Shown in pieces: positions 6,431 through 61,700 of a DNA stretch of 64,000 bases (position 1 is the stretch's first letter; the number at the start of each line of letters is the position of its first letter). This stretch comes from Bugula neritina (lineage: Eukaryota; Animalia; Bryozoa): NCBI GenBank assembly GCA_964035545.1, contig OZ037770.1, positions 14,126,642 to 14,190,641 on the forward strand, in the 5' to 3' direction. The notes beneath the pieces are model-generated. The model was not told the DNA's origin and did not search any database. It saw only the letters and a program-made list of their open reading frames with translations. Both the position numbers and the translations under genes were made by a program.

Positions 6431-9400
6431 TTAGAGCTTCCCCTGTTTGCAAAAATGAATAAATAAAGTGTTAGATATACTTAATCATAATATATAGTTT
6501 GACTAACTTCGCAAAAAGCTATTGGTATGTATCAAAACTGGTGTGCGTAATTGTTAACTGATTACCTAATGTATGTGAGCTATATATAGTTACAGTAATT
6601 TAGCATCTTAAATGTATAATATTTTTATAAGAGCTTCATAAGATAACAACACAAATAATATATCATAAGACAATGCAATATTATTTATTCAGCAGCAGCT
6701 AATAATGTGTAGTTGGTTTTTTATTTTTGACTTTAAAGTTGCCAACCAAAACTTTTTAAGTTTTCATATGTTGTAAAGTTGGAATTGGTTCATCAAAGCA
6801 TTAGTCAATATGTGTTTTATTTGGTACACATTGTTAATCAGCTAGTATAGACCACATCATTTTTGCAACAGGTTTAAAAATATCTCCCAGTGCTGCCATT
6901 AAAGGCATCATGTGAAAACATTTGGGATACAATGTATATAATAAAAACATTAGTTTTGCAGAATTGCTTTGATACCTGGTAAAAATTTTTTAATAACTAC
7001 AATTATTTAACTAGTAATCATCATTTTCTTTTGTCCGAGCGTATTTATTTTACAATTTGATATAGTAGATGCTTTCTCTTCAAATGCAGTGAACATATAT
7101 TATGACACGGGTTTAAATTATCAGATTAATTTTATTAGATGCTGTATGAAGATTATAACATAAAATGAAAAATAGTACTATAGCTATTAAAACAAAAACA
7201 ATAAATGAACAATAATTAAGAACAATGAATAAACGATAAAAGATCAATAAAAACATAATATTTTTGAACTAAATTTAAATTCTGAAAGTCATCAAATGCC
7301 AATTTGAAATTATCTTGAGACAGACAACTTTTTATTAAAATATTTTTATAAAAATAAAATGATCTTAAGATATTTTGGTAACTTTTTGTATCTGCAAACA
7401 AAAATAGTGAAGCAAAAAACTAATACCGTACAAGCAGTTATGTTATGTTTAGAATATAGGTATATTAAACACATTGATTTGAACACAGCATTTGTACTAT
7501 AGCACATTTTTTTCTTGAACTAAAAACAAAACTATGCACAAAAAAATCTCAAATCAAAATTAAAAGTTGGCTCCAATGTTTATGGGGTTTACTGTAAGTA
7601 TTTATGCTGTTGGCAAAAGTTCCTGAAACAGAAAAAAAAAAGAAATATAGAACAAATTAATGTACAGATATGAGAGAGAGAAAATGTGTATGAACATATA
7701 AACTACTTGTATGAGCTATAGAATACCTGTATAAGCATATAAGTTGTAACCTGTTTGGGCATATAAACTACCTGTATAGGCCTCTAGCAATTAATGTAGG
7801 CGTTGTTATTGTTACACATAAAACGCATGCTAATATAAAACAGGCTTCTAAAAATATCACAACAAGCTGAAGTGTTTGTCACAAGTGATGAGCAGACAAA
7901 GCTGATACACTTCATTGCTTACATTTGGCAAGTAGATGTCACTGCTGCAATCACCACCAGGGTACCTGACTTCATGTGCCACTACAGGGCCATCTGGCTC
8001 CTTGCCAAAGTCTACCAGAAACTTGTTGTTGATGGTGAGTCCTCCTCCAACAGTATCCACATCAACTTGCACCATGGCTGTTCCATTACTAGAAAACGAT
8101 AAATAAATAAGTCTGTGCTAGTACAGCACTTTTCTTTAGAAAGCTACATGAGCCAAATTTAACATATGGTTTATCGCAGTTTTATACAATGCTGTAGGCC
8201 TAGGTGCCTACATAATGCATAGCTCACACATTTTCAAATACTTATAACTTTTGAATAGTGAACAGACAGTTTTAAAGTTCTATATTAGCATATAAAAGCA
8301 ATTTGAGCAGTTGAGTGACTTCTCTGAATACTCCTAAGATAAAACTCATAGTTGGCCGGGTTTCTACTAACTAAATCATGAACGTGTTGACTACATATGG
8401 GCAATATGTCACTCGCATATACACTAGGCAGTGAACATCGTTCACTCATCTCTCCATGCAGTACCAGCCTGTGACAAGCTAATTAAAACATGACATCCCT
8501 AATTTATTGTTATGTAAATAAAATGCAAATTAAATTTTAATTTTTGACCACGCTCAATGATCGAAAAGGAATTTTACACAATACCTGAATACTAATTTTT
8601 GTCTTATAACAATGGACAAATTTGAACTCTAACTAGACCAATGGCTTTGTGGTATAAGCTAAAGACTGAGAGTCACATGACTAGTCACATGAGCTGTAAG
8701 TAGTCACATGGGTAGTGACACAAGTATTCACATGACTACCCACTTGGGTAGTCACATGACTAGTCACATGACTAATCACATGAGCTGTCACATTAGTAAC
8801 TACCTGATCAGATTCGGATAGAACTGCCTGTCCCAAGGAGTGAGCAAAGAGTCCGTCACATAGAGTCTCTTCCCGTCCAGACTGAGTTGTATCATCTGAG
8901 GTCCGCCGTGCAGAACACGACCTTGAACCTTTGCTGCTGCCGGCTGCTCACTGAGCTCCTTGTCGTCGGTGACCTTCACCGACCCTTCCTTAGTGATTGA
9001 TCCACCGAGGAACACCTGCAATAAGTGACAAACTCACTTGCAATATTGCTATTAGATGCACTGTATATCTTGTAATGAGAGAGTATAATCGAGTTTATAG
9101 TTATTAAGAAAGTATTATGCTTCAATATTCACCAAAACATATTATGATATCAATCATAGAAAGCCATAGTTTGAGTTGTACGTTTGGGAGGTGAGCCAAA
9201 ATACACAAGTTTTTAAACTGGAGAGTGATTCAGATAGTGAATATTTAGCTTTTAATGGCCTATATGAAAGAGGAATGGTTTATAAGTTAAACATACAGTG
9301 GTGTACTGCATTGAAAAATAATTGCCCCCACTAGGAATCGAATCCGAAACCTTCAGTCTTGCAAGCAAGTGTGCTACCATTACACCACAGAGGCCACTGC

Positions 9401-12400
9401 AGGGTAAACTCAACACTACATCCCACCCAGTTCTCTGAACTTCACCGGCCTATCTATACAACTCTCTCAGTCTTCAGGCACCCCTGGCCTCTCAACTCCC
9501 TTGGAGTACTACTACTACACTTCACTAAAGGCCGAAATAACTTGAAAATTATTTTGCCCAAACTGGGATTCAAACTCGAGACCTCTGGCTTGCAAGCAAG
9601 TGTGCTAACCACTACACCATTGGGACATTGGGTAAACTCAACACTACATGCATTATTAACAGTTTCTACTATTAATTGGTAATTTTTTTTATAGAATTTG
9701 AAGATTATATAACACGTCAACGAAAATATTATTCAACAGTGGAATGTTTATTTGTTGAAATGCTACATTTCATTACAGAACAACCAACAAAGGTAGTTAA
9801 GGAGAGGACAATTCTTAATTTAGTAGAAATAAAGGTGATTTAAGGTTTTCATTGAAACATCATACTTATCCAATAAGCTTTTTGACACTTTTTTTAATTG
9901 AAATGAAATTTTGAAATCATTGTATTATTAGGAATGTTTATTGCAAAAAGTCTATTCTATGAACAAAACTCTAAATTTGTGAGAATATGAAACATATTCA
10001 TCATTTAAAGCACATCAAATTTGCAAAAATTTAGATTACTGAAAGTTCGTGTCTAGTGAATTTAAATTTTAGGACAGGAAACTCTCAAATATTTTGGATG
10101 AGTTAGAAATAATATTTCTTTGACCCGGAGAAAGCTAAATGCTAAAATCACATTAGAAGATCTGAGTACATTATCAAACAAAGATTCCTGCACAACATAC
10201 GACATAGAAAATGTACTACCAAAATGTGTATGTTAACACCTATCTGCAATGGATGTGACGATTTAGACACATTTAACCCAGTGCAATTGACAAAGCAGTA
10301 TTCAGTCACTCTGAGTTAGACATATTCACTCACCTGACCAACGAGTTTAGGGGCAGCAGGATCTGTGATGTCATACTGTCGAATGTCTCCGTGCAGCCAG
10401 TTGGAGAAGAAGAGAAACCTGTCATCCATTGATATCAGGATATCAGTGATTAGTCCTGCATGGTTACATAATATCAGCATGTATATAATAATAATAACAA
10501 CACAAACAATAAATAACTATATCTAAATGTATTATAATTTAAAATGAAATATAATTGATAACGTAGTAACTAATAATTGATTTCTTGAGATTTGGTGTTT
10601 AGTATATAATTATATTATTAGCAAGTAGAAGTTTGTAATCTAGACAGAGATGAACATATTATTAATATTATACAGTTGTAGATAAGCTGGTGAAACTGAT
10701 GTGAGAGGGTATTACAGAACCAAGAGCGGATATTATATCACTTGACAGCACTAAAAGTGGCAGCAGTTGCATAGCAACCATCAAGCTTGTCGCTGTTTGC
10801 ATGGATGTGGAAAGTCACATTAACAAGTTATTGGCAAATTTGAAATTAAACTTGACTAGGATTAATTTGCTCTGACACAAGACGTAGCGCTTGAGGCATA
10901 AGAAATTGATTAAAGCAGTAGTTAGAATAATAGGTATGACATACCGGGCATGTTAGGTAAAGCCCATCCTTCAACTGCCTTTGGACTCACAGCTATTATC
11001 TTCTCAGCCTCCCATTTGCCACTTTCCTAAAAGCAGACATAAAATAATTTTATAATATGTCAAAATTCTGAACCAAAGAAAAATGTAATATATTTTGCTT
11101 CTTTGTACAGTAAGCGGTTTCAGTCACAAAGAATATTCAAATCAAATCAAATTAAAATGGATCTTTCTCTAATTGGATAAGAGCAGACAGCTAATATGTT
11201 TTATTACTGTGTAGGTAAAAGTATGTGTCAGAATTATGGACTAAATAAAACATTTAAATAGTTTTTTGCTTATTTGTACAGTGAAAATAACAATACTATG
11301 TTTATCAAATCGAATTAAAAGGTTTCCCATGTCTATTGAATAAGAGAAGACAACTAATACATTTCACTTTTCTGAATATAAAAATTATTTGTTGGAAAAC
11401 TTAATCAAATAAAACACATGAAAGGAACCTAGTGGAAGAGAGAAGACAACTAATATATTTTATTTTTCTGGCGACAGAGTGTTGTAGACTACTACGTATA
11501 GTAGGACTCACTTGGTTCAGTTCAAACTTGAAGATGGTGCTGGAAAGAGCACAACCAACAAAGCCGACTGGTTTCTCAGGATTGTGGAGGAACCGGATTT
11601 CCAGAGGGATAAGACCCTCCTCTCCTAGGGGCACTGAGTACTGGTACTTCCTCTTGTTGAAGTCCCACACATGCAGAGAGGTGCCATAATCTGTCGTCAT
11701 AGTAACAAGATAACAAATAAAGCATACTGCATACAGATATAAAAAGAAATGAATAGTTGCAACCATATGGTGTTGTTCAAAAACCTTGAAGCTGTCCAGA
11801 ATACTGTCAGGTACTGAGAAAAGACAACTTCACAAGACAACCCTCGTTCAATTAAATACTTTATGTGTGTTAAACTGTGTTAAATAATGCAGGCAGCATT
11901 CATGAATGCTGAATTTTGAGTGGAATGTGTTTCGTTTGATGTCTGAACGGCTACTGATATCAATCCAATAAGCTAAAAATTGGCAACAGTGCAGATACAT
12001 CAAAAGATTATAAAAACTGCAGCAGGCAATATTTGCTTCAACATAGCTGTGAAATACAGCCAAGTTTTATTTTGAATATTGATTGAAGATAGTCTACCAA
12101 TGCATTGATGCATTCCACCACCAAACGGGCAAATAAATGAAATTATATCAAACTGTAGAAAGCTATAGTCATGCAACTATGGTCAGCTCTTTCTAATAAC
12201 AGCAATATTAGTAACTCTCTTTAATTTAGTATGCATGGCTGATGCTGAAAAAGAAACCATTTTAAACTATAAGCTTCGATAAGATAGGCAACTGGTATAG
12301 TAAATGTGACAAACAGATAAGAAACCTCATAAATAATCTTTTAGAATTTAACCTCAATTCATTAACCTCCTATAAAAAATAACAATAATTGACAAGCAAT

Positions 12401-30859: not shown

Positions 30860-31816
30860 TTATGCAGTGGCGGCTGATCTCTTGGCTGGGGCTACCTTTG
30901 CCAGTATTTGAGGTTTAGTAAAGAGATTCTTAATGTGCAGCCGATAACCAGGGGTCATGTAGACATACAGAAGTGTGTTCAGGGCTCCGTATAGTGACTG
31001 AACAATAATGGCCGCCCATCTAGTAGCCGATATCACTGCAGATGAAATGCCACCCACGACGTCCAGAATTACCGCCACAAATGTGGGAACGTAGGAGATG
31101 TAGAACAGTAAGCATATTAGCAGAATGTACTGAGCTGATCTTTTAATCGTGCCATCATCTTTTGTTACTGCGTGTCTGTTTTGCATCTTGTTCAGCTCTT
31201 TCAACACTTTGTACAGACAGATGGTGCAGATGAAAGAAGTGATGGAAATTGATACACTGAAAATGACTGTCGTTTGAATGTTAGGAGATGGTGGCAACGA
31301 CCCAAACTCTCCAAAGCAATAGCCTGCAGTGTTGGTGGCTACTGATGCGGCCATTAAGCCCAAACAGCCAACCCAAATGGCTAAAATGCAAAGTCCTAAA
31401 TTATTAATAACTTTATTACTGTCAAGGTTTAAGGGATGACATATTGATGCAAACCTTTCGTAACTTCCCAAGGCGAGAACTGAGTTTCGAACTGTTGCAG
31501 TTGTCAAGCCAAATGTGAAGAAAACAATTTGCAGCCCCCGAGCGTGCGCTAGCGGCAAGTTGACGATGAGATTGTTCAGACCGCAGTTGATCATCAAAAT
31601 GTAGGACAGACTCGCAGTTATGTCAGAAATCCCTATGTTGATGATTATCCAATAGTACGGAGTCTTTTTAGATTTGTTCACTGTACTCAACACACACAAA
31701 TTTAGAATGTTAAGCAAAATGCTCACCGCATTGAATGAGACGTATGCTGTGGATATGGTAGAGCAGGCGCACAACTCTGTGTCATTGCCTCTGCTGCAAA
31801 GCAATGAATTTTCCAT
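30860..31816 (-). CDS. Intronless rhodopsin-like (class A) GPCR, 318 aa, orphan or chemoreceptor-like
   Basis: ATG at 31816; seven hydrophobic segments; N-glycosylation site NDT; TM1 Asn; TM2 ISD; DRY variant SYERF.SICHP; TM6 ISYVP; TM7 LNTLLYVY. Confidence 0.85.
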   Translation of the reverse strand: MENSLLCSRGNDTELCACSTISTAYVSFNAVSILLNILNLCVLSTVNKSKKTPYYWIIINIGISDITASLSYILMINCGLNNLIVNLPLAHARGLQIVFFTFGLTTATVRNSVLALGSYERFASICHPLNLDSNKVINNLGLCILAIWVGCLGLMAASVATNTAGYCFGEFGSLPPSPNIQTTVIFSVSISITSFICTICLYKVLKELNKMQNRHAVTKDDGTIKRSAQYILLICLLFYISYVPTFVAVILDVVGGISSAVISATRWAAIIVQSLYGALNTLLYVYMTPGYRLHIKNLFTKPQILAKVAPAKRSAATA

Positions 31817-33721
31817 GTTTGTACTGCTTGAATGCAGTTGTGGTGTAAAGAGCAAGTTGAAACGTACTTTGTTAAAAGATCAACAATATTTTGTGACTTG
31901 CAGCACACCGCATTACACACGTCAGCTAAGATGAAGCCAACAAAAATGAATAAACACACTATGTAGACATGCATAAGCGAGTTGAAGTTTCTTAAATGCT
32001 ATTGGCCAATTCAAAGATGATTTCAATTTATTTTAAGGAGTTAGTAGGTGTATGGTATATACGCATAAATTATATTTTATATATAAGGAAAATTGAATTA
32101 TATTGTAGTTTATATAAATTGCATAAAAATATTTAATATTATGCGGCTTAAATTATTGTAATTTACATTATGAAACTGCTGTGTAAATTCTCAATATATT
32201 TGTTATATAGTTTTTGAGCACAATGTTTTGCTAAAATCAGATATTAAATTGCTAATTAATGGTATATGGTATATTATAGTGGTATATTTATTGTGTTCAA
32301 TTATTGCTAATTAAACGAAAGAATCACATTCTCAGTCAAAATGTGTATTTGCTATTTTTGATAATAATAAATTAATCTATAATTCTTCAGCTCCATGCTC
32401 TATAATATATTGCTAAAATAAATTGGATGATAAAAAGGTTCACTGTGATTTAAATAAAATGTTTGTCTATAGCAAGCGAACTCTGTTTAAAACTCATTTC
32501 TGAATTTTATTAGACAATATTATAGCAAGTTGAAAGCAATGCTTTATTGCATAATATGCATCATGCGATATTTCTACTAGGAGTTATCTTCTATATCTAT
32601 GTTTAAAAAAGAAAGAAATATTATTTCACTAAATACTATTAGTGTGCATTGAAGACAAATCTGAATAGTGTGAAAGAATTGTTTTGTAAAATTCCATCGT
32701 TAAAATAAGACAACACTAAATAGTAGTACGTAAATATTTAGCTTAGGACGTATTGGGTTGCTAAAATAATAATTAATAATCAATGCTATGATGACATATG
32801 CTAAAAGCAGAAATTAAATAAATGTGCCTAAATTATGTAACCCACTCATGTCAATGAATAAACTAAGACAGGAAGTTTATTTGAATGTGTAATAGGCTGT
32901 CAATGTGGAAGAGTTTCCAGGTCATTATTTTCAGGTTGTTCAGTTGCAAAATTTGGAGTTATCTGCTCAAATAAAACGTATGATTGAGTAGGTAATAAAG
33001 TAGTTGCTGATAACCATTCTAACACAATCTTTATTCAATTTAGCACACAACACTCTATAATCAAAAAAGGACTTTAGAGTAATACATGTATACAAAGGCA
33101 ATGAGTAAGATCTAAATGAGCAGAAAAAAAGCAAAAAAATGATCAAAGCACATTTTATCCCTTGGTGATAAAATCGTTAAGACTGTTATTTCAATAGCAA
33201 GCAATTTAGAGCTGTCCAATTTAAAATATCTTCACAAATATCAGAAAAACAAACTAATTACATTTTATAATATACATGAACCGTATAACTCTCACAGTTT
33301 AAATATTTTCCATAAATCTCACACATTAATCTATATCAAAAAAACAAAAACATATTTAATTATTATACCACCATGCAATAAAAGTAGATATTTTAAACAG
33401 CAAAACATGTTTAAAGCAAGAAAGCTTTTACTGCATGGAGCTTACAAATTACAATTTTTTATATTTTAAACTTTTTTTAATTATAAAATGCATGACAAGG
33501 CATATATCCTAGCACATTATGAGAACAGAAGTTGAAAGAAGTAAAACAATTTTTTAAAAACTTACCAATTAAGGTGTTTAAAGAATAAAGTTTTTGCACA
33601 GCAAGTTTTGAACAGTTTAAGCAATGAAAATGTGTGAAACTTTGTAAAAATTTAGTTCTTAAATTATAGTTATTATAAAAAAACTTTCAATTTCTTATAA
33701 ATTACTCTCGTATTTTAAAAT

Positions 33722-58700: not shown

Positions 58701-61700
58701 GTATATAAGCAAACATTGTCACGCCAAAATTTGCCAAAATATAGAAAAATAACTAACAAAAACAGCAAAGAAAAGACTGCAATCAAAATTTAACATATAA
58801 AATAAAATGAAAAACTCAAAAGAGAGGATGCAAGTTGATTCAGAAAAGCATCATGCCATATAAAAGTGCATATCCGGCACTCAATTAAACAAATTATATT
58901 TTTAATTTTAGAATATATTATGTAATTAGGATTATTTTATTATATAGTGGCTTGATTTTAAAATTAAATGTTAAAATAATTTTTCTTATTAGAAAGTTTT
59001 AAATTATACATGATGAAAGATATTGCAAAATAATCCACATAAGTATTTATTTTGTGTTTTCAAAAACTTTACATAAATGATAAATTATATGTGTTGAAGT
59101 TTATAACAAACATACATAGCTAATAGCAACAGAGGTCTGAAATCCAGGTACAGCTTTAAATCCCTTTTCAGCAATCTGTGGAAACTCCCCCTGAGGGTGG
59201 AGGAGAAATGTAGCACCTGCTCGGTAGGATGAGTGGGGGTCGTAATTTGCCTGGTCAATAAACAAGGTCAGTGAAAGTCCTGCAATGCATATTCAGATGT
59301 GTAAATATATATTCCTGGTAAGGCGGTAGAATTTATACTACCGCCCTACCAAGATTTGAATCAGAGTTTTTCAATTTGAAGTCAGAGTAATATCTGTCAT
59401 ACTATTAGGGCTACAATAAAGTCTCAGCATAACATGATCTGCATTAAACTAGAATATTTTTGGCACGCTTCTGTCTCTCAAAAGATTATTTGTAATTTGC
59501 AGCATATAAACTTTTTCGGAAATCTAAATTGGAACAAATATTGCTCTATCACCAGTTCATTGTTAAGTTGTTGAACAATGCTATGCTATTTTGCTTATAT
59601 AAATTTCTTGCTAAAAATACTATTACATTTTGAACAGCTTGTTTGGTTTCTTTGTAAAATATTGTTTTATTGTGGGTTTATTGCTATATTGTTTTATAAA
59701 GTTACAATTTTTATATATACCTAATATATGTATAATACAATCTATTTATAATGTAAAGTATTTACCAATACTTTGACCGGCTTGCTTGGTTTCCTCGTAG
59801 CTGCCATTTAAACCGCTGTTATACGTGAAACAGTTACCAAATCTCCTGTCATAAAATTGGTAGAAGTCTCTATAATTAAAGAAACAAAATGATTACATCA
59901 CAAAATAATTAATCTTTTAAAAAATGTCCAGTGTAAAACTAGGAAAAGCAGCTCAGACTTTTAATTTGTAAATACCTGTTATTGCCAAGTTTGACATCCT
60001 AACTACCTTTAGAGTTCTGAATGCTCTGCAGGTTAAATCAAAATTTAAAATCATAATTATGACTAATGCAAGCTTGGGTAAAACCAAAAGGTTTTAAAAT
60101 GTTTTATTGAAAATTAAATATTTTGCATACGTTGTATTGCATTTAGCTCCATGGAAAGTACAGTCTACCAACATATCTTCCAGGGAATGCCCGCGGCCTA
60201 TAACAACATATAGAAGTACATTTCCATCAACCTCCAAGAAAATTGAAAACTAAAGATCCAATTTTTTAATTTTATTCGAGAAACTATACTTACAAACGAG
60301 TTCTTCCTGAGTTAGTGACTGAACAAGAGTGTATGATCTCAAAACCCGCTGCTGTGCCATTAATTCAGTATCTAGCAGGTAGCCAGGGTGATCTGGAGAA
60401 AACGTTGGCAGAGAGTATATTTTTTTCTGATAACAGAAAACAACTTTTAGCTATTTTATATAAATTTTTATAAAAATTATAACTAGAAGAAACCTAAATT
60501 AAATTTGAATTAATAACTTGGGTAAAGAGAGAACCTTTTCTTATATAAAGATTTAGAGTTTTGCTCAATCTTGTTTCTGTTCAAGCAAATGATTACATAA
60601 TATCATGTAAATTTTATTTATTATATAAGAGTTACCATCAGTGAATAATTATGAAAATTGTAAAATAGCTATGTCTAATATTTGTAAATTATAGTTACAA
60701 ATTTTTTCTTCAAATATATTTAAACTTTGAAGTTTCTTTAAAAAAATACTTTCTTCAGTCACTATGAATTTTCTGCAGCTCATTAAAAAGTATGTTATTA
60801 TTTTATAGTTTTAAATTTTATTTCAACTGTTGCCCTGAAATCTCATAATATTATAATTTTTGTGCTGCAGCCTCAATTATTACTTGAATTATTTGCTTAC
60901 TATAGGAAACACTTATATTAGCTGAGAAGTTTTGAAATTTTATTGTAGCCAAACTTTTTTCTATATATAGTCAAATAAAATATGGTATGGGAGAGAGAGC
61001 TTTTCGCGTTAATTTTCGATAACAAACCTTAAATATAATAACACCAAAGCATTTTGACTGTGTTTTTATCTGTAATGGTTATTCCCACTCAATAAGCTGA
61101 CCTTGCCATAGCTTTATGCTACTACACCAAGGCATTTAAATAACTAGAAGCGACTACAACCGTTTGTTTACAGTAGCAGAATAAAAAATTATAGCACTAT
61201 ATAAAATATTCTGTTTCCATTACCATATTATGATAAATATTTCAGTTGAAACGCAAAATAACAAAATTATACTTAGCTTAAGCTTGTTTTACAATAAAAG
61301 AGAAAAACTATAATGTAGGGTTGAGTTTACCCAGCAGCCCCCGTGGTGTAATGGTAGCACACTTGCTTGCAGGCCAGAGGTCTCGGGTTCAAATCCCGGT
61401 AGGGGCAATTATTTTCAAGCTATTTTGGCCTTTAGTGAAGTGTAGCACTCGTAGTAGTACTCCGAGGGAGTTGAGAGGCCAGGAGAGCTTGATGGCTGAA
61501 GGAGTAGTAGATAGGCCAGTGGAGTTCAGAGAACTGGGTGGGATGTAGTGTTGAGTTTACCCAGTCGCCCCTGCATAGTGTAATCAGTTAGCGCATGCTT
61601 GCAAGCCAGAAGTGTGTGGTTCAAATCCCGGTGGGGCCAAAGTTTTTTTCACATATAAGAGCTACCAAAACTTCATCAAACTATACAATAAATACAGTAT

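Follow-up and report, generated by a model that had tools for sequence, protein, structure and literature searches.

The 64,000-nucleotide (nt) stretch of Bugula neritina DNA analysed here (contig OZ037770.1, positions 14,126,642 to 14,190,641; the window) carries two copies, A and B, of one short element, which consists of a long terminal repeat (LTR, about 105 bp), an internal region of about 120 bp and a second LTR, about 335 bp altogether. Both are dead copies of a terminal-repeat retrotransposon in miniature (TRIM) of the Helenus, or TRIMp3, kind. The family they belong to is very probably mobilised by a lineage of autonomous gag-pol LTR elements whose pol protein contains the domain DUF7047; we link the two because they match in a 12-nt primer site, in end motifs and in the length of the target-site duplication (TSD), and because intact, nearly identical copies of the autonomous elements reside in the same genome. 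Particle, reverse transcriptase and integrase would thus be provided to the TRIM by these elements in trans. The more interesting question is whether the 5' end of tRNA-Phe truly primes the DUF7047 lineage. The parts of the two copies are listed below; S1, S2 and S3 are the three subfamilies into which the LTRs of the TRIM fall.

9312-9648, minus strand: copy A as a whole, with the TSD TGCAT on either side (plus-strand letters; ATGCA in the orientation of the element)
9307-9311: left TSD of copy A, TGCAT on the plus strand, identical to the 5-mer at 9649-9653
9649-9653: right TSD of copy A, TGCAT, exact
9312-9420, minus strand: 3' LTR of copy A, 109 bp; S1-like; Rfam tRNA score 29.3 bits; 89% identity to the LTRs of the young copy L003
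9323-9394, minus strand: tRNA-like unit of the copy A 3' LTR
9421-9542, minus strand: internal region of copy A, 122 bp, non-coding; 88.5% identity to the internal region of L003
9421-9437, minus strand: polypurine-like tract of copy A, TCAGAGAACTGGGTGGG, adjoining the 3' LTR, kept in all aligned copies and resembling the polypurine tracts (PPTs) of the DUF7047 elements
9531-9542, minus strand: primer-binding site of copy A, AGTTATTTCGGC, one change from the family site AGCTATTTCGGC
9543-9648, minus strand: 5' LTR of copy A, 106 bp; S2-like; Rfam tRNA score 30.7 bits; nearest LTR that of L025 (87.9%)
9555-9626, minus strand: tRNA-like unit of the copy A 5' LTR
61314-61653, plus strand: copy B as a whole, with the TSD TATAA on either side
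61309-61313: left TSD of copy B, TATAA, repeated at 61654-61658
61654-61658: right TSD of copy B, TATAA
61314-61417, plus strand: 5' LTR of copy B, 104 bp; S1-like; Rfam tRNA score 46.1 bits
61337-61407, plus strand: tRNA-like unit of the copy B 5' LTR, called by ARAGORN as a tRNA with a 2-nt 'anticodon'
61418-61429, plus strand: primer-binding site of copy B, AGCTATTTTGGC, one change
61418-61543, plus strand: internal region of copy B, 126 bp; 95.8% identity to the internal region of L005
61527-61543, plus strand: PPT-like tract of copy B
61544-61653, plus strand: 3' LTR of copy B, degenerate; S3-like; 75% like its own 5' LTR

Both copies start with TGTAG and end with (T)CA, and a purine-rich tract, CAGAGAACTGGGTGGGA, adjoins each 3' LTR. 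The preliminary description of this DNA had divided positions 9307-9653 into an LTR of 106, an internal region of 122 and an LTR of 109 bp, with an exact TGCAT TSD, TG...CA ends and a purine tract by the 3' LTR, and had reported a second insertion with its own TSD at 61314-61653. All of this was borne out, the first interval including both TSDs and the element itself spanning 9312-9648. The tRNA-like unit that it had placed in both LTRs was recovered by the Rfam tRNA model, for which three of the four window LTRs scored above the gathering cut-off of 29 bits (46.1, 30.7 and 29.3 bits). The 5S rRNA model had no match in the window, the matches being to the tRNA model only. Within each window copy, the LTRs share no more than 75-77% identity. 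About 290 bp from copy A lies a minus-strand open reading frame (ORF; 8800-9021) that looks like an exon of a methanethiol-oxidase-like gene, so that copy A may be intronic.

The comparison of copy B with its own 216-Mb assembly gave 1149 first-look candidates, and all 40 that were scored were near full length, with 81-88% identity. An alignment of 31 copies (30 fetched copies and copy A, each with 40-nt flanks) had sharp borders, the similarity running from TGTAGTG to TTTT(A/T)CA, with LTRs of 104-109 bp, internal regions of 117-126 bp and no ORF. The only features of the internal region are a primer site and a PPT. Perfect 5/5 TSDs surrounded 17 of the 31 copies when read at fixed alignment columns, and 18 after the slightly longer end of copy B had been placed correctly; seven more copies had a TSD matching at four of five positions, and those without a good TSD were mostly truncated or abutted another insertion. 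Clearly, the family is mobile and its insertions are of the integrase type (TG..CA ends, 5-bp TSDs), far beyond what a chance repeat would give. The median LTR-to-LTR identity of 91%, together with LTR pairs that are 100% identical in two copies (L002 and L003), indicates that the family was active over a long span until recently. A conserved 20-mer of the LTR had 686 matches in the genome (at most three mismatches) and a conserved internal 20-mer had 143, with 0-2 matches per strand for the reversed-pattern controls. The roughly 400 LTRs without this internal region are probably solo LTRs or LTRs of sister families; within the fetched loci, no solo LTR was found.

Two loci of the family deserve separate mention. 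L002 (C9:8506242-8506564) lacks a matching TSD although its LTRs are identical (flanks ..CTTAC / AATTT..), which recombination between two copies or an adjacent deletion could explain. At the 3' end of L017 (C3:10081819-10082143), a truncated LTR is joined directly to the start of a second TRIM LTR in inverted orientation, a pattern suggestive of a head-to-head insertion, either nested or adjacent.

The arrangement of two tRNA-like heads with A and B boxes, 228 bp apart, could also be read as a dimeric tRNA-derived short interspersed element (SINE), or as a local 1.5-unit tandem duplication of one, moved by a long interspersed element (LINE) and not an LTR element at all; a tRNA or SINE scanner would indeed call two heads. 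However, the first 23 nt of the repeat precede the tRNA-like +1 position, its ends are always TG and CA, the TSDs are fixed at 5 bp, and there is no A-rich or LINE-derived tail. Moreover, the sequence between the repeats begins with a primer site and ends with a PPT, both of which are common to the gag-pol LTR elements. Taken together, these features make a SINE dimer extremely improbable. The preliminary description had likewise favoured an LTR element over a SINE dimer, and had expected the latter if other copies lacked TG..CA ends and TSDs of fixed length; in the 31 copies examined, the ends and the 5-bp TSDs were fixed and no LINE-type tail was present, in favour of an LTR element.

Candidates for the autonomous partner of the TRIM came from a genome scan for the 12-mer of its primer site, AGCTATTTCGGC, behind the end of an LTR other than its own. 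An element at L044 (579-4885, 4307 bp) has this 12-mer directly after its 5' LTR, 271-bp LTRs that are identical to each other, the TSD CTTGT, ends of the form TGTAATG...CAACA, and the PPT GAGATCAAGGGGAAA. Its ORFs encode a gag protein with a zinc knuckle and a 1011-aa pol protein comprising protease (PR), reverse transcriptase (RT; RVT_1), DUF7047, RNase H (RH) and integrase (IN). L045 and L049 are two more copies, with 99.9% identity to L044, and L046 (5152 bp) represents a second family with the same primer site and the same order of domains. The search of the genome for DUF7047 returned 33 matches, which form about four families (A-D) with full-size elements of about 4.3-5.2 kb. At 40 sites in the genome, CA and the 12-mer are followed by a base other than C, and 24 of them are followed, 1.7-2.6 kb downstream and in the same orientation, by a DUF7047 match. 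Since these 24 sites precede DUF7047 matches of all four families, the whole DUF7047 lineage in this genome uses this site. The other 16 sites (for example C1:14567352, C1:21608583, C4:13365716 and C8:9123854) have no DUF7047 nearby and are often followed by T; they may belong to further non-autonomous or decayed elements with the same primer site.

Related elements are present in other public assemblies. Four of them (L051-L054; 43-57% identity in pol) are about 4 kb long, with TGT..ACA ends, 5-bp TSDs and a PPT of the GAGATCA..GGGG type. Directly after their LTRs stands AGCTAT-NNN-GGC (NNN being CCC, CAC, CCC and ATC, respectively), the complement of GCCG..ATAGCT, which varies only at tRNA positions 5-6. 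The search for pol homologues also yielded one from Watersipora, among at least 120 listed, almost all of them without a name. Beyond the 12-mer and the end motifs, no BLAST similarity was found between the TRIM and autonomous family A. Thus, the autonomous elements with the same termini and PPT that the preliminary description had proposed to look for do exist: they have TGT..ACA ends, a 5-bp TSD, the shared primer site and a similar PPT.

Their identity differs from what that description had suggested, namely a partner such as BEL/Pao or Copia: the order is PR-RT-RH-IN, with RVT_1, DUF7047 and rve, and with neither RVT_2 nor a Pao-type Pfam family. Copia was ruled out by the order PR-RT(RVT_1)-DUF7047-RNase H-IN and the lack of RVT_2; as the integrase stands last and RVT_2 is missing, the DUF7047 lineage is not Copia. 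BEL/Pao was ruled out by a test of Pfam signatures, not by phylogeny, as no Pao-type family (Peptidase_A17 and the associated DUFs) matched even at E<=10. The PR-RT-RH-IN order fits Ty3/Gypsy, but the usual Gypsy domains RT_RNaseH and RT_RNaseH_2 had no match in the pol protein of the lineage, which we assign to no named family. Its protease matches retropepsin-like families, its RNase H is of the RNase_H/RVT_3 type, and its Integrase_H2C2 match is weak (19.6 bits). The best solved relatives of the integrase in the PDB, which gave integrase matches only, are retroviral (mouse mammary tumour virus, E=1e-11), and the Atlas neighbours of the protein of the lineage are a mixture of Gypsy-like and retrovirus-like proteins. 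The literature search gave no mention of DUF7047.

A recombinant links the TRIM and the DUF7047 elements. The insertion at L047 (319-4252), present in duplicate as L048, consists of a 5' LTR of family A type (92-95%), the 12-mer, a TRIM internal region and a TRIM 3' LTR, so that the switch lies at the shared primer site. One perfect TSD, ATATG, surrounds the whole chimera, and L047 and L048 share their flanks, indicating one integration event with a subsequent duplication. A matching TSD would not have survived ectopic recombination between genomic copies. The structure is what intermolecular transfer of plus-strand strong-stop DNA between two cDNAs in one particle would produce. A further LTR element, about 3.4 kb long, has since inserted into the TRIM internal region of the chimera (L047:666-4109; C5 about 8190565-8194008), with ends TGTAAT...CTACA and direct repeats of at least 224 bp that are 96% alike; it is also present in L048, which is longer than L047 by about 4 kb and has extra repeats.

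Exchange at the primer site may likewise have occurred among TRIM copies. LTRs of different subfamilies are combined in copy A (5' S2, 3' S1), copy B (5' S1, 3' S3-like), L011 and L022. The LTRs of the window copies are thus only 75-77% alike despite intact TSDs because they belong to different subfamilies, and not simply because the copies are old. Copies with unlike LTRs, A and B among them, would be explained if plus-strand strong-stop DNA had jumped, at the primer site they have in common, between two cDNAs packaged together. As the grouping of the internal regions does not follow the LTR subfamilies, the crossover in mixed copies cannot be located from them. In weighing the mobilisation of the TRIM by the DUF7047 lineage, two points have to be set on the other side: the chimera is one event, which cannot by itself tell which of families A-D mobilises the TRIM, and the solo LTRs are deduced from counts alone.

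The 12-mer shared by the TRIM and the DUF7047 elements comprises the first 12 internal bases of the TRIM, directly after the 5' LTR, and is the exact reverse complement of nt 1-12 of the host tRNA-Phe. No genes fit GCCGNNNTAGCTCAGTNGG other than five tRNA-Phe(GAA) genes of the host, all of which start with exactly the matching 12-mer. The complementarity extends from the base next to the LTR as far as tRNA nucleotide +1 and no further. As the preliminary description had stated, no canonical TGG site stands directly after the 5' LTR, and this is true of all 31 aligned copies, which rules out a canonical site for a tRNA 3' end. The same description had proposed comparing the AG(T/C)TATTT(T/C) site with 3' ends or halves of host tRNAs; a tRNA match was found, at the 5' end of tRNA-Phe and not at a 3' end. 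Self-priming of the Tf1 type was ruled out as well, as the LTRs of the TRIM, of families A and D and of L051-L054 contain no complement of at least 7 nt to their own primer site.

We therefore lean, by a narrow preference, towards minus-strand synthesis being primed by the 5'-terminal 12 nt of tRNA-Phe. For tRNA-Phe to act in this way, a cut behind nt 12 would be needed, comparable to the one by which RNase H releases the self-primer of Tf1, and plus-strand strong-stop synthesis would then run off the 5' end of the tRNA. On this proposal, the shared primer site would be exactly 12 nt long because of that run-off. It is doubtful, but worth weighing, that the 12-mer was kept for a different function, for instance in packaging or dimerisation or because it pairs with an unknown small RNA, and that its match to tRNA-Phe has nothing to do with priming. 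A primer of this kind needs a 3'-OH at U12, within the D stem; no 12-nt 5' fragment of tRNA-Phe was observed, and no precedent for a primer ending inside the D stem was found in the literature searched, which also held no relevant work on primer sites matching tRNA 5' ends or tRNA-Phe. These points weigh against priming by tRNA-Phe. Against the idea of a signal unconnected with priming, however, stand the exactness of the match from the first base after the LTR to tRNA nucleotide +1, and the 12-mer being the only stretch common to the TRIM and four otherwise unrelated autonomous families. Moreover, the relatives from elsewhere, compared with the tRNA-Phe of the present host, keep GCCG..ATAGCT and vary only at tRNA positions 5-6, and neither a canonical TGG site nor an LTR complement of at least 7 nt offers another primer.

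Combining these elements, we tentatively propose, as a reading that falls somewhat short of an even chance, that the DUF7047 lineage and the TRIM both start reverse transcription from nt 1-12 of tRNA-Phe, with the tRNA cut in trans and the length of the site set by the tRNA 5' end. This mode of priming would be undescribed for any retroelement, and no animal Helenus before this TRIM would have been linked to a named partner through a recombinant copy.

As to the template RNA, the 105-bp LTR of young copies consists of 23 nt of terminal sequence, a 71-nt tRNA-like unit and the tail ATTATTTTACA. In young copies, all 71 positions of the Rfam tRNA model are matched (43-46 bits) and the anticodon loop is shortened; over the LTRs examined, the scores range from 29 to 46 bits, and ARAGORN reports an abnormal anticodon loop. 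The LTR contains an A box, TGGTGTAATGG, and a B box, GGTTCGATTCC, and the only run of at least four T in the element (T4) lies 3 nt before each LTR end. This layout, in which both boxes are intact and the one T4 stands at the end of the LTR, is compatible, as judged from sequence, with a transcript of RNA polymerase III (Pol III). The genomic RNA could then be made by Pol III from the tRNA-like +1 position of the 5' LTR, with read-through of the weak T4 of the 5' LTR and a stop at the T4 of the 3' LTR, which would give a U3 of about 23 nt, an R of about 79 nt and a U5 of about 3 nt.

Whether Pol III makes the template RNA appears to us evenly balanced. The T4 in the 5' LTR is expected to end many Pol III transcripts after about 80 nt, and this weighs against such a template. 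RNA-labelled libraries (four runs, available as assembled contigs only) contain pieces of the element, but contigs cannot show starts, ends or strand and so give no direct evidence of Pol III transcripts; several of them run into unlike flanks, as expected for copies inside longer transcripts of RNA polymerase II (Pol II). The same points speak for the element being a true TRIM in which the tRNA-like module is a passenger, a SINE relic within the LTR, and in which the template RNA comes from Pol II or from host-gene read-through; Kojima, too, leaves the use of Pol III unproven for Helenus (PMC10886601). Yet the A-box/D-arm and B-box regions are intact across the three LTR subfamilies while the acceptor strand varies: across 55 LTRs, conservation is 97% in the A-box/D-arm and anticodon-arm columns against 83% in the 5' acceptor strand. 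The single T4 exactly at the LTR end, with no other such run in the element, also speaks against a passenger, and neither a TATA box nor AATAAA was seen in the 105-bp TRIM LTR, whereas the autonomous LTR has both. Given these features, we consider a passenger module unlikely. In one run, X1 ('METAGENOMIC RNA-Seq'), the summed contig depth on L003:1401-1920 was about 10,000 times that of the flanks, which is implausibly high for the copy number and comes from contigs only.

Elsewhere in the window, an intron-free ORF of 331 aa (30860-31855, minus strand) has as its only relatives (38-44% identity) proteins that carry the rhodopsin-type G protein-coupled receptor domain PF00001.

With this element, the known range of TRIMs with Pol III promoters extends to another phylum. 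It also matters for annotation: tRNA genes or SINE heads will be wrongly reported at about 700 LTRs of this 216-Mb genome, and repeat libraries for bryozoans are scarce (2026 bryozoan genome paper, PMC13326412). If nt 1-12 of tRNA-Phe do prime the lineage, this would be a fourth way of priming among LTR elements, after the tRNA 3' end, the anticodon-region fragment and self-priming. Such priming would be open to test in a system that offers intact, nearly identical autonomous copies, a parasite of high copy number and natural recombinants that record strand transfers.

Among known systems, the closest is Helenus, defined by Kojima (2024) as TRIMs with tRNA-derived LTRs, with published sizes of 311-1263 bp (PMC10886601). 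The Bugula neritina element meets this definition, and its kind is thus already known; kinship in sequence is not required for it, because Kojima argues that Helenus arose several times (PMC10886601). Like Helenus, it is short and non-coding, with two LTRs that each contain tRNA-derived A and B boxes, and with a primer site, a PPT and TSDs; probable solo LTRs, coexisting subfamilies and a tRNA-like part that is unlikely to be a working tRNA are further likenesses. The listed animal hosts of Helenus belong to six phyla, Bryozoa not being among them, and animal Helenus have 4-bp TSDs, primer sites for tRNA 3' ends and Gypsy partners; 5-bp TSDs occur in plant Helenus and in fungal Helenus, the latter with anticodon-loop primer sites and Copia partners (PMC10886601). 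The published rule for animals is broken by the present element, which differs in its host phylum, in its 5-bp TSDs (a contrast that the preliminary description had drawn and that the 18 perfect TSDs among 31 copies confirmed), in a site that pairs with nt 1-12 of tRNA-Phe, and in its partner, a DUF7047-bearing PR-RT-RH-IN lineage. It is set apart from the published families by description, and our literature search found no Helenus or TRIMp3 described in bryozoans and no description of this element. Cassandra and Ajax, the latter with 5-bp TSDs in an animal (PMC10886601), also carry a Pol III-type small-RNA promoter inside TRIM LTRs, but their module derives from 5S rRNA, whereas here it is tRNA-like. 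With SINE2 elements, the TRIM shares the tRNA-like head with A and B boxes, small size and high copy number; unlike SINEs, which have one head, a LINE-type tail and TSDs of variable length, it has LTRs, TG..CA ends, a primer site, a PPT and fixed 5-bp TSDs.

For the proposed priming, the nearest precedents are two. Truncated tRNAs prime Drosophila copia, Ty5 and fungal Copia and Helenus elements (cited in PMC10886601). As in these, the primer proposed here would be a 5' part of the tRNA and not its 3' CCA end, and the tRNA would have to be cut to provide a 3'-OH. The truncated-tRNA sites of the copia type lie in the anticodon stem-loop of tRNA-iMet, Tyr, Ile or Asp, and the elements are Copia; here, in contrast, the site corresponds to the first 12 nt of tRNA-Phe, the cut would fall in the D stem, and IN follows RT. 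In the self-priming of Tf1 and sushi elements, an 11-12-nt 5'-terminal RNA segment pairs with a site just after the LTR and is released by an endonucleolytic cut. The present proposal likewise involves a 5'-terminal RNA segment paired just after the LTR and released by a cut at the end of the duplex; however, that segment is the 5' end of the element's own RNA in Tf1, whereas here, where the LTRs hold no complement of at least 7 nt, it would be the 5' end of a host tRNA.

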